A DNA stretch of 64,000 nt from Vicugna vicugna (lineage: Eukaryota). The stretch covers positions 186,001 to 250,000 of the forward strand of contig MU063738.1 in NCBI GenBank assembly GCA_013265495.1. The letters run 5' to 3'. A model generated the notes under the pieces. It saw nothing but the letters and a program-made list of their open reading frames with translations, was not told the DNA's origin and did not search any database. Below, one piece after another: positions 40,151 to 63,952 of this stretch (positions are counted from its first letter, which is position 1; each line of letters begins with the position of its first letter). The translations under genes were made by a program, and so were the position numbers.

Positions 40151-42394
40151 AGCTACAGTTACGCACCAGTGCATGTGGACGAGGGGAGGGTCAGCCCCTG
40201 GGGTCACGAGACCCAGTGCCACGCCTAACTGGCATCAACAGGAGAACCTGGGAAGCCTTGGGGGCTTTTGGTGCCACACGGAGTGAAAAACTGTCCCTTC
40301 CTTGACTTCCTGCCTCTTGGGACTTTTAAAAGGCTCAAGTGAAATCAAGGCTGTAAGCTGTTGTTACTCGCCCCCCACCCCGGGGGGTCCTCTGGTGCCT
40401 GAGCGGCTCTCAGCTGCCTCTTCTCAAGGCACCACAAGGTTCCCACCTCCCCATCTCGACCCAGGCCCTGCCAGGGCCCAGGTGAGCTGGCCCTTCAGAA
40501 TCCCACCCCTCAGGAGGGGAGGGGCACGCTGGGGGGGGCAGAAGCCTCACACACAGGGACTCTCAGAAGGAGCAGACAGCCCTGCACAAGGGCTTTTTCT
40601 GTAATTAGACCGCTGTACTGGAGGCAGCTCTGAGTAAGGCGTGGGGAGCTTTGATCGTCTTACCAGCAGTCAGGAGGGCCACTTCGACCACCCCCCGGCC
40701 TCCAAGCCACCTCGTATTCCAACCGTTCAGCCACTAGCCTCTCCGGCATGCAGGATGGTGTCCCGGGACCCTGAGCATCAGGAAATTCAAAGTCTGACCT
40801 GAGTCCAGCCTGCTGAACTTTCAGCCCCTTCCTTTTTCCTCCTGGCAAGGGACGCTTTTGTGGGATTCCCTTCTCCAGGGAGAAACAGAAGAGGGACAGC
40901 CAGGTGACAGGGCCCCCTCACTGAGGGTGCCACTGTGGAGGTGTGGGAGGGAACCTCTGCTGAACAGCTGACCTTGTGCCCTTGACCCTCCAGTGCCCCT
41001 TTCCGTCTGAGGAATGCTGAGCATCAGCAGGACTGCCCAGAGGGTCTTGGGCGTCAGTCCTGTCCCCCCGACCCCCTCCTACCCGTGTGCAGCCCTGCCA
41101 GACCCGCGGGTGGCAGACTGGAAACGCCCGCATCAGCCTTTCCTGCGCCGGGTCCTGACGGCTGCCTTCTCCAGACAGGCTCCGGCCGGCCCCGCGGGGG
41201 CGGCGGTGCCGCAGCGCTGCGGGGACCCAGCTCTGGAGACACGCAGTGGCGGCTGGGGTCACAGGGAGGAGGCAGAGGAGAGGGGTTTGCAGGTACCGGG
41301 AATCCCCGGGGTTCCTCGACTCCAGGAGATGAGGAGCCCTGGGAAGCCTGAGTGAGCTCAGCACACGGAATTTGAGGAGTGTCATTTCTCGGGTCGAACC
41401 CCCAACCTGATTCATGATTCTGAGTTTGCAGAGCAGGGGAAAGCAGGGAGCAGCTGCCGGGGGAGGCGGGGAGGCAAGGGGGTGAGGCCAGGCATGCGAG
41501 GGGCAAGGTCAGGATAGGGGGCTGGCCTGACACCAGCATAAGTTCCGCGGGGCTGAACTGGGGTCCTGAGGTCTGGGCGGTGAGTGCTGAGGATCGAGAA
41601 TGGGGTTCAAGTCCTGGCCCTCCCCGAGAGGGAGAGGCGGAATGGTCCCCACGGCAGAAGACCCGCGGCGGGCTCCCATCTGGGAGCCGGTCCGGTCCGG
41701 TGCCCTGGACACTTGCTCCTCCCCCGCAGGGCCCTCCGCCGCTTTGTCTCTTGCCCGAGACGCGGGAGGAGGGCCCGGGGCACCAGCGCCCGACGGGTGC
41801 AGGGCGGCTGCGGTCGGGGCTCTCGGGCCGATGCCCCCCGCCTCCCCCACCCATTTTGTCTCGGTCCTCTTCTTCGCCCTCCCTTTTCTTTTCCTCCTCG
41901 ACTCAGGGAAACCTCCATCCGTATCCCCTGAAGCGAATCGGCTCCCTCCCACCCGCTAGCGGGTTCCCGACCGCGGGGAGGCCCCCGCCCCGCCGTCCTT
42001 CCCAGCCAATCCCGGCGCCCGAGAGGATCGGAAAGCCCGTGGGTGGCGGGTGCAGTGGGAGTGTCGCGGGGGGGGCGCACAGCGGGCGGGGGCGCCTCCG
42101 CAGTCTCCGGGGGCGCGCGGCCGGCCCCGCCCACCCCAAACTTATCCGGGGGCGCGCGGGCCGGACCCCTTCCCTGCCCACGTCTCTGGCACCCGCCTCC
42201 CCGCCCGGTCGCGGCCGCGGCCGCAGCGGCGGCGGCGGCGCACGGGCGGCCCCCGGCGGCTGGCTCGCGGGGGCGGGGGAGGGGGCCTGCGTCGGGCCGG
42301 CGGGGTCGCCCTCCGAGGGCCGGCCCGCGCCGCGTGCAGGCGGATGTGAGGAGCATCTCAATTGGCGGGCGGGGGAGCGGGGCAGGTGTTACTA

Positions 42395-42557
42395 CTGCAG
42401 CGCGCGAGGGAGCCGGCGGGCGGAGCAGAGCCGCAGCGGCCGGGTGGCGGGGAAGGGCGGAGAGGGGCCTGGACTCCCGGACCGCGGCCGGACCGCGGCC
42501 GCCCCGCGCGCCGCCATCGCCACGAGCTCAGGCCCACCGCTCCCGGAGCGTCCCCGG
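42395..42557 (+). other. SYT2: Probable non-coding first exon of SYT2 (start approximate)
   Basis: Lies inside the CpG island downstream of CCAAT/GC boxes, contains no ATG and ends at CGG|GTAAGA (42557/8). The TSS cannot be fixed from sequence alone. Confidence 0.65.
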
Positions 42558-43105
42558 GTAAGAGGAGCCCGGCGGGGCACCTGAGAGCGCGGCCGAGGGT
42601 CGGGGGCGCGGGCGGATGCGGGCGCCCACCTGGGACGCTCGGACTCGGCTCGGCGCTCACCGCGGTAAACCAAGTGTAGGACGGAGCCCGCGGCGGGGAA
42701 CTGGGCTCCGGAAGTCCCTGAGGGTCCCGGGGGAGGTGTCCCGAACGATCCCCTCGTCCTCGCTGAGAGCCGTGGGAAGGGGCGCCGCGGAAGGTGGATA
42801 GGGCGGGTGTGCAGTGAAGAGTGGCTGCGGGCGCGGGACCCCAGCCGCGCCCGCCGCAGTGAGGACGTGGGCAGGCTCGGGAGACCCCGGGCGCAGAGCC
42901 GGGCGCGCCGGGGACCGGGCAGTGCGCGGAGCCCAGTTCCTTTCCGCGCCCCCGGCCCTGCGGCGCCGTCCGGGTCTGGGACGGGCGGCGGCATCTTCCG
43001 CCCCTTCCTCTCCCCGAAACTTTTTCATACTCAGCAAGCGCCGCGTCTCGGTTCGTAGACACAAGGTCCCAAGAATCCTGGCGAGGGATGGAGCTTGGAG
43101 AGGCC

Positions 43106-43132
43106 GGGGAGGGGGTGGGGGAGGGGAAGGGG
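43106..43132 (+). other. Strong G-quadruplex-forming motif at the 3' edge of the CpG island
   Basis: GGGG-A-GGGGG-T-GGGGG-A-GGGG-AA-GGGG: five G4-5 runs with 1-2 nt loops. Confidence 0.7.
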
Positions 43133-45174
43133 CAGCAGGGCAGTGGGTGCGCATGCTCCGCTCGTTTTGCTGTGTGACCTTGTACGAGCTGCTGCACATC
43201 TCTGAACCTCAGGGTGACAGGGTGCGTAGTGCCCCAGCTGGGGCAGGGTGGTGGGTGAGCATCTGCCCGGGCCTGGGCACTGAGGATGCGCCGCCCTAGT
43301 TTGCCCGCCTCTCTGCGGGAGCTGGGGGCTCACTTCCTGGGGAGGCAGGTGGCAGCGTGGAGCTGGTTTCCCAGCGTGCCAGAAGTCAGGAAGCTTCCAT
43401 TCTGACTCCACCTATGACCTTGGACAACTCACTTATCCCTCTGGGCCTCAGTATTTTCACCTGGAACATGGGGGTATCTGCTGCCCCCCCACAGGTGAAG
43501 TGCCCTGGAGGGAAGGGGGTGCAGCTCCATCAGTCCATCCCATCTGTGACCCAGCATCTGGGGGAGCTGGCTCCCTCCCCCCACAGAGGCACTGTTTCCA
43601 TTCTCAGAATCTCCACACCACACACCTGTGCAGGGGACAGAGCCTTCCCTGGAGAAAGGTTCCCAGTGCTGGACAGGAGGCCTGTGGTAAAAGGAAGATG
43701 TCAGGGGCCCCCAAGGTCATGCTTGTCTCTGGACTGATGAGGATGCTCTGAACGTCTGCACATTGTAGCCCCTGGCACCCTGCTGGGCACTGCGGGGGGG
43801 GGGGGGCTTCCCATGGGAGAATAAACTTGACTCCTTCTTGGGGTGATCCTGGCTCCATTCCAGCAGAGATGAACGGTACCATCTCATTGGGCCTCAGGGT
43901 GCTGTGGCAAAGTCCTGGTTTAGGATAGGAGCCCTAGGTTTAATTTTAGGCCTTACCTCCCATTCGTGTGACCTTGTGTGACCTTGGGCAAGCCCCTTTC
44001 TTGCTTCCTTGCCTGTACATGGGAGGGATTGAACTAGGTGACTGCCCAGGAGCCCCCCAGCCTGAAGTCCTGCGGCTGCAGTTCTGGGCTGGTGTCTGAT
44101 AGTGAGACGTGGGCCCAGTGGGGCAGGGGGCCTCGGAAATTCCCCAGAGTGGGGATGACCTGAGACAGGATTCTGTGAGTGGGCAGTGCATCCGCAGGAG
44201 CCCCGGGTGTTACTAGTTATTGGCCGTGTGCCCTTGAGCAAGTCACTTTACATCTTTGAGCTTCAGTTAGTTGTCAGAACAAAATGATAATAGCTGTGGT
44301 GTTTTAGGATGGCTGTGAGGAGTGAATGAGAAGCATGCTTAGTACAGGGTGGAGCCTCCCAGCCCCTAGCTAGCATGAGGCAGCTACTGCTGAGGAGAAG
44401 GGAGACCCTTGCCTCTCTGCCAGCAGGGGGGCAGGAGTGGGCTGGGGAGGGGGGCACACTTCAAGGTGCTCTCCCTGCAGTTTCCAGGGCTCCTGCGGAA
44501 GGGCACGGCAGCACTGCAACCCCCACAGCCTCGCTGCCTCTCTGCCTCTGTCTCTGTCTCTGTCTCATTCTCTCTTGGACCATCAGAGTCATCCTGCAGC
44601 TGAAACTTCATGGGGAAGAAACTGCTGGACTTTCCTCTCATCTCACATCTGTTTTCCTCTGGTTCCCTTGTCCCACTTTCTGCCATACGTCTGGTCCCTT
44701 CTGTGGTTACAGGGTGTGGCTGCATTCCATCCACTCCCCGAGCCTTCCGGAAATAAGCCAACTGCAGCCAAGAGCAAGTGAGGCTGGACCCGGGGAGGGA
44801 ACAGGTAGAGCACCTCTGCACCCAGGACCCCAGGATGCCAGTGTGGGCCATACAGGTGCCCTGGGGGGCTGGGTCGTGGGGTGGTGGGGCCAGGATTGGC
44901 TTACCCTAGACTTGCTGTGCAACCTTAGGCAAGTCACACCCCCTGGGCCCCTGTCTTCCCAACTGCAAAGGAAAAGTTTGGTTTGGATGATTCTCAGGGC
45001 CTCCTGACCCTTCGTGCCGGAGTAGCAAAGAAATGGTCTTGCTGGCTCTGCTTTTGCTGAGGCTGGGAGGGTGTGCAGTGGGTGCGAGGTTCTGAGAGTC
45101 ACGCAGTCGCTGCCCCTCGGTCGCAGTACTGTGACGGCCTGGGGAGAGGGGAGTACATCTCCTCAGAGTGCTGA

Positions 45175-61519: not shown

Positions 61520-62032
61520 CTCGCCAGGGCAGCTGAGGAAGAAAAAGGAACAAAAGGCATCTGGACAGAAAGAAAGGTGTGAAACTCTCTCCCTTTGCCT
61601 GATCTTGTCAATGGAAAGTTGTNNNNNNNNNNNNNNNNNNNNNNNNNNNNNNNNNNNNNNNNNNNNNNNNNNNNNNNNNNNNNNNNNNNNNNNNNNNNNN
61701 NNNNNNNNNNNNNNNNNNNNNNNNNNNNNNNNNNNNNNNNNNNNNNNNNNNNNNNNNNNNNNNNNNNNNNNNNNNNNNNNNNNNNNNNNNNNNNNNNNNN
61801 NNNNNNNNNNNNNNNNNNNNNNNNNNNNNNNNNNNNNNNNNNNNNNNNNNNNNNNNNNNNNNNNNNNNNNNNNNNNNNNNNNGCTCAGCATGTGGCAGGA
61901 CATGGGGTCAATACACAGAAATGGGCTGAATTTGCACCTGTTAGCAATGAACAATCTAAAAACGAAATTAAAGCAATTCTGTTTACAGCAGCATCAAGGA
62001 GAATCAAATATCTAGAAATAAATTTAACAAAA
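61520..62032 (+). mobile_element. Ancient L1 ORF2 (RT region) fragment spanning the gap
   Basis: Left flank resembles L1 ...GAAAAAGAAATAAAAGGCATCCAGATTGG...; right flank translates [48 protein letters not shown], like L1 ORF2 [49 protein letters not shown]. Confidence 0.9.
61623..61882. other. Assembly gap (260 N)
   Basis: Run of N. Confidence 1.
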
Positions 62033-62109
62033 GTGCTGCGGGCAGAGTGTCCGCACGTGTGTCTGTGGTGTTCACCCCACCGCTCCGCCCACAGCGTCCT
62101 CCTGCAGCC

Positions 62110-62278
62110 ATGAGGAGCATCTTCAAGAGGAACCAGGAGCCTGCGGTGGCTCCCGCCACCACCGCCGCGCCTGTCGGGCCCACAGACAACACCACGGAGA
62201 GCGGGGGTGCTGGGAAGACCAAGGACGTGTTTGCCAAGATGGGGGAGCAGTTCTTCAATGACATGAAGCTGATCCCCT
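62110..62278 (+). CDS. SYT2: Synaptotagmin-2, first coding exon (exon 2): luminal N-terminal domain. The exon probably starts at 62095 with a 15-nt 5'UTR part
   Basis: ATG at 62110 (GCC-ATG) gives [56 protein letters not shown], matching the SYT2 N-terminus [11 protein letters not shown]...; N-glycosylation sequon N-T-T kept. Acceptor ACAG|C at 62094/5 with branch-like TTCAC at 62071-75; donor CCT|GTGAGT at 62278/9 (phase 1). Confidence 0.97.
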
Positions 62279-62894
62279 GTGAGTGCCCCTCGCGCCCGGG
62301 GGCCGGGCTGGGGCCCTGTGGGTGGGACGGCTGAGACCCTGCCCGGATTACTGGGGGACCCACTTCGGGGGGTTGGCAGTGTGGTCTGGCAGTAACGAGG
62401 GAAGGAGGGGCTTTATGCCCTGACCACACGCCCAGAGGCAAAATGTTCCTGTAATGTAGGAGACTGTCGGAAGAGAAGATAAAAAGTGACGGGACAGAAA
62501 CCGTCATTCACGTTTCTAGCCACACTCTGAAACCGCTTTATTTCAGACAATAGAACATAAAAGCCCCCTGCTTCCTGGATTTCTGGTCCAGTCCAGGGAG
62601 CCAGCCCGCTGGGAGACGGTGCTTCAGGCCCATCCCCAAAGCCTGCAGGAGCTGAGGGCGCTTGCCTTCCGACCCTCGGCCAGGGCGGACAAGGCCCCAC
62701 CCACCCTGCAAGGGTCCAAGCAGAGCCTGCGGTGCAGGCTGCAGCCACCAGGGCCCTGCGGACAGGAGGGCCCCCCGGGGTGTGGCCTGCACGCCAGCCA
62801 GTCCTAGGTGTGGGGAGCACATGGGTGGGGCCGCGGCCTCGCCCAGGCCTCTGGGGGCTGCGGGCGGCAGCCTGACGCCGTCTCCCGCGGGCAG

Positions 62895-63061
62895 TGCCGC
62901 CCTGGGCGCTCATCGCCGTTGTGGTGCTCGTCGGCCTCCTGCTCCTCACCTGCTGCTTCTGCATCTGCAAGAAGTGTTGCTGCAAGAAGAGGAAGAACAA
63001 GAAGGAGAAGGGCAAGGGCGCCAAGAGCGCCATGAGCATGAAGGACATGCGAGGGGGCCAG
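62895..63061 (+). CDS. SYT2: SYT2 exon 3: transmembrane helix, palmitoylation Cys cluster and polybasic linker
   Basis: Acceptor GCAG|TG at 62894/5 completes the split Leu codon; (L)[55 protein letters not shown]; 167 nt; donor CAG|GTAGGG at 63061/2. Confidence 0.98.
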
Positions 63062-63224
63062 GTAGGGAGCCCGTCCCCTCGCCCGCAGGTCCCTCCCCTC
63101 AGCTCGCAGCGGCCCCGCTTTCCCCAGGGTTCTTTGGGAGACAGTTCCTGCCCGAGGAACCGGCATGGAGGGTGGAAGGAGGGGCCTGTTTCGAGTCGTC
63201 AGCCTTGGAGCGGTGGCCTCCAGT

Positions 63225-63317
63225 GCGCGCATGGGTGTGTGTGAGCACACGTGTGCGTGTGTGCACGTGTGAGCACGCGTGTGGGCACGTGAGAGTGCGT
63301 GTGAGCACACGTGTGCT
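63225..63317. repeat. Degenerate TG/CA-rich tract in SYT2 intron 3
   Basis: 18-nt direct repeat GTGTGAGCACACGTGTGC at 63239 and 63299; four CACGTG. Confidence 0.85.
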
Positions 63318-63499
63318 GGGGCCCCCCAACGGGGCGGGTCTGAGCTGCAGGGTCTCTCACCACTGTCTTCTTCCTTCCTCTCCCATCTGCGGTGCACCCG
63401 GACTGCACTCCTGGTATGTGTTGCCCGGGCTGGGGGAGCAGGGGCCATGATGGTGCTGCCCTGCATCCCTTGACGTTCCCTCCTCCCCCAGCCCCCCAG

Positions 63500-63619
63500 G
63501 ACGATGACGACGCCGAGACGGGCCTGACGGAGGGGGAGGGGGAGGGGGAGGAGGAGAAGGAGCCAGAGAACCTGGGGAAGCTGCAGTTCTCCCTGGACTA
63601 CGACTTCCAGGCCAACCAG
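63500..63619 (+). CDS. SYT2: SYT2 exon 4: acidic linker and start of C2A
   Basis: CAG|GAC at 63499/500; [40 protein letters not shown]; 120 nt; donor CAG|GTGTGT. Confidence 0.98.
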
Positions 63620-63784
63620 GTGTGTGGGGCCGGAGTGGGGGGCTGGGTCTGCAGGGAGGGGCCCGGCAGGCTGCCCACCGCCCTGGCCACAGAAGTGCCT
63701 TCCCAGCTTCGGTTTCTCCAAGCGTCCCTCCGGCACCGCGCGCCCCCACCCCTGGGCTGACCTGGCCACGCTCTCTCCCCACAG

Positions 63785-63952
63785 CTCACAGTCGGCGTCC
63801 TGCAGGCCGCAGAACTGCCTGCCCTGGACATGGGGGGCACCTCAGACCCTTACGTCAAAGTCTTCCTCCTCCCAGACAAGAAGAAGAAATATGAGACCAA
63901 AGTCCATCGGAAGACACTGAACCCTGCCTTCAACGAGACCTTCACCTTCAAG
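63785..63952 (+). CDS. SYT2: SYT2 exon 5: C2A domain (Ca2+-binding loop 1, polylysine strand); gene continues beyond the window
   Basis: ACAG|CTC at 63784/5; [56 protein letters not shown]; 168 nt; ends AAG|GTCCTC. Confidence 0.97.

Follow-up and report, generated by a model that had tools for sequence, protein, structure and literature searches.

Divergence of the botulinum neurotoxin-binding helix of synaptotagmin-2 in camelids and other Laurasiatheria

Introduction

The juxtamembrane luminal helix of rodent synaptotagmin-2 (Syt2 residues 44-60) is the receptor for botulinum neurotoxins BoNT/B, /G and /DC (PDB 4KBB, 2NP0), and in crystal structures the interface spans residues 47-58 (bioRxiv 10.1101/2025.08.27.672333). 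F54, F55 and I58 have been highlighted at this interface, and F47 takes part in a proposed stacking interaction (PMC5495808). The human F54L difference leads to weaker toxin binding (PMC6215321, PMC8553082), and binding is abolished in the triple mutant F54A/F55A/E57K (PMC8553082). Knock-in mice bearing this triple mutation in Syt2 have been made and used for in vivo assays, and the equivalent triple mutant of Syt1, itself a further toxin receptor, functions normally in cultured neurons (PMC8553082); together these results show that the toxin-contact residues are not essential.

The DNA analysed here, a stretch of 64,000 bases that we refer to as the window, encodes a SYT2 helix that differs from the rodent receptor at nine positions. 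A sequence-only reading had taken it for a candidate natural toxin-escape allele, produced either by positive selection from a toxin or pathogen or by relaxed constraint limited to the luminal domain. We asked how the helix came to differ, and whether its differences would be expected to alter toxin binding.

Results

The window carries the first four coding exons of SYT2

On the forward strand, 62110-63952 comprises the first four SYT2 coding exons, consecutive and with canonical splice sites throughout. Spliced together they encode 208 residues that run in order through a luminal N-terminus (56 residues), a PPW motif, a transmembrane helix, a Cys cluster, a polybasic stretch, an acidic linker and the start of the C2A domain. 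The end of the window (64000) falls inside C2A, and further SYT2 exons lie outside it. The features are as follows.

62110..62278, + strand: first coding exon, luminal N-terminus, 56 codons plus the first base of a split Leu codon, phase 1
62188..62196, + strand: N-glycosylation sequon N27-T28-T29 (DNTTES), read directly from the sequence
62221..62277, + strand: juxtamembrane luminal helix K38-P56, equivalent to mouse residues 44-62, from the translation and its alignment to 2np0_B and 4kbb_C
62223..62224, + strand: site of a one-codon deletion (GAG, E44) between K38 and D39, from the codon alignment
62895..63061, + strand: second coding exon, with the PPW motif, transmembrane helix, Cys cluster and polybasic juxtamembrane stretch, aligned with nine other mammals
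63500..63619, + strand: third coding exon, acidic linker, 40 aa, protein identical in the compared mammals
63785..63952, + strand: fourth coding exon, start of C2A, 56 aa, protein identical in the compared mammals

In the first exon the ATG is at 62110, the acceptor AG at 62106-62107 and the donor GTGAGT from 62279, and the second is bounded by an acceptor AG at 62893-62894 and a donor GT at 63062-63063; exon phases are the same as in nine other mammals. Searched against PDB with phmmer, the first exon matched synaptotagmin-2 (4kbb_C, E=2.8e-11) ahead of synaptotagmin-1 (E=1.8e-4), and the named nearest proteins in the protein database were synaptotagmin-2 without exception. The fourth exon gave 100% matches to many C2-domain proteins in a representative search. 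The proteins of the third and fourth exons (40 + 56 aa) show no difference from those of rat, sea lion/fur seal, hedgehog, sheep, pangolin and pig, bearing out the earlier statement that 96 downstream residues are unchanged. The luminal sequon, which is N-T-T in the window and N-S-T in other mammals, is present in every mammal aligned. This sequon, the closer relationship to SYT2 than to SYT1, and the order of transmembrane, Cys, polybasic, linker and C2A segments are those of an SYT2 orthologue. The gene is best explained as a normal and presumably functional SYT2 of a South American camelid (llama/alpaca group).

Two further features lie upstream. A 260-base run of Ns occupies 61623-61882, inside an L1-like repeat and 228 bases 5′ of the SYT2 ATG; the counterpart of this interval in a second camelid contig is only ~68 bases. 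The sole CpG-island-like block of the window (42001-44000; G+C 0.69, CpG observed/expected 0.73) lies ~18-20 kb 5′ of the first SYT2 coding exon and could be a SYT2 5′ exon or promoter.

The exon is authentic and its helix is shared by two camelid lineages

So divergent an exon might have been assembled wrongly, mis-called or drawn from a pseudogene copy, and the N run close to the ATG would fit such an artefact. However, the 1051 bases from 62050 to 63100 are represented by 100% of sampled 31-mers in three DNA runs and by 90-93% in eleven more, these 14 runs coming from at least seven studies under five organism labels, and RNA runs contain 26-31% of the same words, approximately the exonic share. 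An independent assembly of another camelid (Logan contig L004, from another run) contains the same exons with intact splice sites. Given also the perfectly conserved downstream exons and the canonical splice sites, an artefact is scarcely credible, and that reading is effectively refuted; assembly error, which had been named as the first thing that would undo the toxin-escape proposal, is not the source of this helix.

We then considered how widely the helix state is spread among camelids. Alpaca synaptotagmin-2 (XP_031530643.1) has one difference from the window in 112 residues (T25 vs A25) and an identical helix. L004 has five replacements in the first exon and shares 18 of the 19 helix residues, with DNA 94-96% identical (4-6% diverged) over 3.1 kb including introns. 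Extant camelids comprise two tribes only, and we infer from these comparisons that the window comes from an animal of the llama/alpaca group and that L004 is Camelus, which belongs to the other tribe. Because the helix state occurs in the window, in alpaca and in L004, it is older than the divergence of the two tribes. Of the nine differences, eight would date from before that divergence, with M46V alone appearing younger, on the llama/alpaca branch. The word allele does not suit a state common to alpaca and to a second camelid lineage that is 4-6% diverged. Searching proteins with the exon-level ORF recovered no other camelid fragment.

Nine positions differ from the rodent receptor helix

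Residues 38-56 (62221-62277, + strand) are in frame with the ATG at 62110 and have EDMFAKLKEKFFNEINKIP as their rodent counterpart. The rodent reference, from PDB chains 4kbb_C and 2np0_B, reads ...ESQEDMFAKLKEKFFNEINK, and the helix in the solved toxin complexes is EDMFAKLKEKFFNEINK(IP). The camelid and rodent segments are orthologous, lie in the same exon and are equally far from the transmembrane helix. Alignment to both chains confirmed nine differences over the 17-19 aligned positions, with F47, F54 and F55 in register as first reported; N56 and P62 are also shared, and Met at positions 50 and 58 maintains the hydrophobic face. Set against these identities are the loss of E44 and the replacements M46V, K51G, K53Q, E57D, N59K and K60L. 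Two neighbouring observations also held: the ESQE of both rodent and human is KTK in the camelid, and the luminal domain is three residues shorter than the human one (exon of 56 aa vs 59 aa). The net charge of the segment goes from -1 in rodents to +1 in camelids.

Codon alignment revised several of the individual changes. What had been called E44K is a one-codon deletion of E44 that retains the laurasiatherian K43 (camelids AAG ACC AAG (gap) GAC, sheep GAG GGC AAG GAG GAC), and the supposed Q>K has no counterpart on the camelid lineage. L50M and I58M, which had been counted as camelid changes, both occur in pig as well, I58M is also found in whales and a bat, and parsimony puts neither on the camelid stem. 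The end of the helix can be aligned in another way, setting camelid M-K-L-I-P against ruminant I-V-K-L-P with two indels; this exchanges three point changes for two events and leaves the distance between helix and membrane the same.

The helix is variable across Laurasiatheria

To place the camelid helix in context, differences from the canonical 19 residues EDMFAKLKEKFFNEINKIP were counted across vertebrates.

Primates, rodents, tree shrew, elephant shrew: 0-1 of 19
Pinnipeds, a bat: 2 of 19
Ruminants: 5 of 19, helix EDMFAMFKERFFNEIVKLP
Pig: 7 of 19, helix EDVFTKMRDRFFNEMNKIP
Pangolin: 8 of 19
Hedgehog: 8 of 19, including F47L
Camelids: 8-9 of 19
Cetaceans: 8-10 of 19, Kogia with F47I
Arctic fox: 10 of 19, including E57Q, helix DDLFTYVQDKFFNQIQSIP
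Coelacanth: 2 differences
Sharks, birds, reptiles: 3-6 differences

Pig, ruminants, cetaceans, pangolin, hedgehog and arctic fox show the same kind and amount of divergence as camelids and likewise keep the FFN core, and cetartiodactyls have in common with camelids L50M and/or I58M, M46V, a shorter N-terminus and high GC3. By these counts the camelid helix falls toward the upper end of a wide laurasiatherian range and is no outlier. Luminal divergence that is common across mammals had been put forward as an outcome that would speak against toxin escape, and within Laurasiatheria (5-10 of 19) this is largely what we found. What sets camelids apart from the other sequences compared is a set of states seen in them only: G51, Q53, D57, K59, L60 and, through the E44 deletion, the residue before D45.

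The variation is unevenly distributed along the helix. In the 24 non-human mammalian sequences tabulated, F54, F55, N56 and P62 are invariant, F47, D45, A48 and E57 rarely vary, and positions 44, 46, 49, 50, 52, 53, 58, 59 and 61 vary freely. E57 is altered in camelids only among these 24 mammals, the arctic fox (E57Q) being the other case. Conservation along the helix is highest at the best-documented toxin contacts, and that the core contact aromatics vary least runs counter to what an escape arms race would predict. At the same time, conservation of the helix from sharks and coelacanth to primates indicates that some constraint exists, which camelids have escaped or which has changed in them.

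At contact residues, some other lineages carry more drastic changes than the camelids. Of all the helices compared, that of the arctic fox (Vulpes lagopus SYT2 fragment, P0266) is the most diverged, with E57Q accompanied by K51Q, and documented toxin contacts are hit directly by F47I in Kogia (P0158) and F47L in Erinaceus (P0255; L007 501-707). We also observed an exon-level ORF with a human-type helix (KLFNEINK, F54L) in many metagenome assemblies (P0265, ENA, 30 member sequences), which is presumably human DNA contamination.

Replacement rates on the camelid stem are raised and fit neutrality

Rates were estimated on a ten-taxon tree of two camelids, pig, sheep, two cetaceans, pangolin, an otariid, hedgehog and rat, the pig DNA coming from a host-contaminated metagenome contig. 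Branch models were fitted with self-written code in which all exon partitions shared one set of branch lengths, on the silent-substitution scale, and a background omega and a camelid-stem omega were estimated separately for each partition. These shared-length models and MG94 took the place of a GY94-F3x4 fit that left branch lengths free in every exon and returned unstable lengths for the stem. The estimates for the luminal exon were as follows.

MG94-F3x4 (best likelihood): stem omega 0.54, background 0.235; LRT 4.2 vs background, 2.4 vs omega = 1
GY94-F3x4: stem omega 0.35-0.37, background 0.16-0.18; stem significantly below 1
Equal codon frequencies: stem omega 1.29, background 0.34; LRT 9.1 vs background, 0.3 vs omega = 1

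Around the helix (23 codons), omega on the stem was 0.88 against a background of 0.37 (LRT 0.06 vs 1, 3.0 vs background). Across models the stem omega is ~2-4x the background and fits neutrality, and in these ten taxa, with estimates sensitive to the codon-frequency model, no model put it significantly above 1. Of the two readings first offered, the one that invoked relaxed constraint agrees with an omega that is raised and indistinguishable from 1, and the one that invoked positive selection by a toxin or pathogen, whose signature would be omega above 1, found no such signature in the codon branch models.

Codon parsimony gives a more lopsided view of the same branch. Counts on the camelid stem were as follows.

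Luminal exon: 16-17 amino-acid-changing, 1-4.7 silent
Transmembrane exon: 5.5-6.5 amino-acid-changing, 2.5-6.5 silent
Next two exons: 0 amino-acid-changing, 1-9 silent

The luminal-exon ratio of changing to silent substitutions is the most lopsided of any branch of the ten-taxon tree, and when silent changes are pooled over the four exons, parsimony yields an omega of ~1-2.5 for this exon on the camelid stem. As support for positive selection, these counts are suggestive only.

Toxin- or pathogen-driven adaptation would hold that K51G, K53Q, E57D, N59K, K60L and the E44 deletion were fixed for lowered use of the helix as a receptor by BoNT/B-, G- or DC-like toxins. The excess of replacements is real and speaks for it, as does the rise in omega over the background (LRT 4.2 with MG94, 9.1 with equal frequencies); the near-neutral omega of the helix, which is nowhere significantly above 1, speaks against it, and so does a divergence that is unexceptional next to related lineages and is equalled in many lineages of very different exposure. 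The same lopsided counts, and the deep conservation of the helix from sharks and coelacanth to primates, also weigh against ordinary divergence, as do the camelid-unique states G51, Q53, D57, K59 and L60 and the place of E57 among the three residues of the binding-abolishing mutant.

The substitution spectrum points to GC-biased fixation

The sequence-only reading had argued that GC-biased gene conversion does not explain the changes, since several run from strong to weak bases or between strong ones. Counted over the first two exons, the amino-acid-changing substitutions on the camelid stem comprise 13-18 from weak to strong (A/T to G/C), 3 from strong to weak, 4 from strong to strong and 2 from weak to weak, which leaves that argument weak at so GC-rich a locus. 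GC3 of SYT2 exons is 0.82-0.92 in cetartiodactyls and 0.68-0.78 in other mammals, with 0.87 at the camelid locus; introns 1 and 2 have 65-67% G+C in the camelid compared with 51-59% in pig, pangolin and otariid, and the whole 64-kb window has ~60%. Spectrum and composition together carry what we take to be the signature of GC-biased gene conversion, and a predominance of weak-to-strong changes is a further point against adaptation to toxin.

The bias would not account for every change. Within the helix, three changes (E57D, N59K and D52E) are strong-to-strong and K60L is in half weak-to-weak, so that four changes are neutral to the bias, and these count against a reading by divergence and biased conversion. 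Polarising intron substitutions on the camelid stem (weak-to-strong 32, strong-to-weak 21) was tried and set aside: the implied divergence of 22% is too high and the alignments are noisy, so that from the introns we rely on G+C content only.

The transmembrane exon is also accelerated

Divergence extends beyond the luminal helix: the second coding exon (62895-63061) has ~9 replacements relative to rat. The camelid changes in it are IAIAVVAG>IAVVVLVG, K>R, N>S, N>S and K>R. The first of these lies at the start of the transmembrane helix (62915-62935), where most mammals have IAIAVVAG, the window has IAVVVLVG and the second camelid has IAVVVVVG, amounting to three or four replacements within the membrane span. 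The other four, in the cytoplasmic polybasic stretch (62985-63055), were gained independently by camelids and by sheep/goat (L001 91633-91797); they fall in KKKKNKK>KKRKNKK and within AKNAMNMKDMK, are all A-to-G, and look like GC-biased fixation at the same sites. Acceleration of an exon that the toxin does not see argues against toxin adaptation as the cause of the luminal changes.

The altered membrane residues could instead point to a change of endogenous function, in which compensatory replacements arose as the helix co-evolved with a partner specific to camelids, in the lumen or the membrane (such as ganglioside composition or glycosylation). Conservation from cartilaginous fish to primates suggests some native role, and a ganglioside-binding site has been proposed in the juxtamembrane domain (bioRxiv 10.1101/2025.08.27.672333, which makes no mention of the earlier-invoked role of K60 in GT1b pre-assembly). 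No partner is known, however, the rate is compatible with neutrality, and both the making of the triple-mutant knock-in mice and the normal function of the Syt1 equivalent (PMC8553082) tell against it; we consider such co-evolution distinctly improbable.

Other lineages show changes of their own in this exon. At the membrane entry, the cetaceans Lipotes, Balaenoptera and Pseudorca carry LPRW in place of LPPW (L002 1498-1662, L011 1670-1834; P0043), and their palmitoylated Cys cluster reads CCW instead of CCC, so that one palmitoylation cysteine is lost; Kogia has PRW, yet retains CCC.

The core toxin contacts are retained in camelids

We next considered what the camelid changes might mean for the toxin interface. 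The core contacts F47, M50, F54, F55 and M58 are in helical register (camelid F41, M44, F48, F49 and M52). Leucine 50 and isoleucine 58 become Met, a conservative change shared with pig, whales and a bat, and E57 becomes Asp, which keeps the charge on a shorter side chain. Camelids also have a glycine at position 51, mid-helix, and a swapped pattern of basic and acidic residues at both ends of the helix.

These features bear on toxin adaptation in both directions. In its favour, several camelid-unique residues (G51, Q53, D57, K59 and L60 are the unique ones) flank or touch the interface, a mid-helix glycine could raise the cost of the induced helix, the segment changes sign in net charge, and E57, altered outside camelids only in the arctic fox, is one of the three residues of the binding-abolishing mutant. 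However, the strongest contacts (F47, F54 and F55) are untouched, the Met residues at 50 and 58 are mild and widespread, and E57D preserves the charge; this is the sole camelid change at a residue with mutational evidence, and that evidence concerns E57K in a triple mutant. Our literature search found no link of camelids to resistance against BoNT/B, /G or /DC. Weighed together with the rates and the substitution spectrum, adaptation to a toxin or pathogen is unlikely. We found no evidence for toxin-driven changes, and toxin escape appears unsupported.

Toxin binding could be somewhat weakened by the glycine, the shorter acidic side chain and the altered C-terminal turn, and nothing in the sequence would argue for its abolition. 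The closest parallel is the F54L of human and chimpanzee SYT2 (PMC5495808, PMC8553082, PMC6215321), likewise a natural variant that is confined to one lineage and located in this SYT2 helix. In that case a single substitution affects a core contact residue and its effect has been measured, whereas the camelid changes leave F54 intact and fall mostly at peripheral or solvent-facing positions. Our literature search found no description of camelid SYT2 as a toxin-receptor variant; the alpaca protein is already in public databases.

Discussion

The camelid case looks like ordinary, near-neutral and GC-biased divergence, and we infer relaxation together with biased conversion as its probable cause: weak constraint and GC-biased fixation acting lineage-wide, tens of millions of years ago, along the stem of the camelids. 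Under this model the luminal segment of SYT2 would be under weak protein-level constraint in Laurasiatheria and would lie in a GC-rich region, probably one of high recombination, in which weak-to-strong changes, amino-acid-changing ones included, would be driven forward by GC-biased fixation. Stem Camelidae fixed E41K, S42T, the loss of E44, K51G, K53Q, E57D, N59K and K60L, with M46V following later on the llama/alpaca branch. The hydrophobic face (F47, M50, F54, F55 and M58) and N56 have been kept, so the helix probably still performs its native role in the vesicle protein.

A broader possibility is that clostridial neurotoxins or some other ligand of the luminal domain selected for the repeated diversification of the helix in camelids, pig, ruminants, cetaceans, pangolin, hedgehog and canids, with the camelid combination (G51, Q53, D57, K59, L60 and E44 loss) measurably lowering neuromuscular sensitivity to BoNT/B, /G and /DC. 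We regard this as quite unlikely.

Were the camelid helix to alter toxin binding, it would be the second natural receptor variant after human F54L, with implications for how species differ in botulism and for the llamas, alpacas and camels used as immunisation hosts for antitoxin nanobodies. More useful than the camelid case itself is the wider pattern. Work focused on human, mouse and rat gives the impression that the toxin-binding SYT2 helix is conserved uniformly throughout mammals. It is not, and in Laurasiatheria 5-10 of its 19 positions vary around a fixed FFN core. Because the helix varies in this way, susceptibility based on the rodent receptor is not transferable to livestock without testing.
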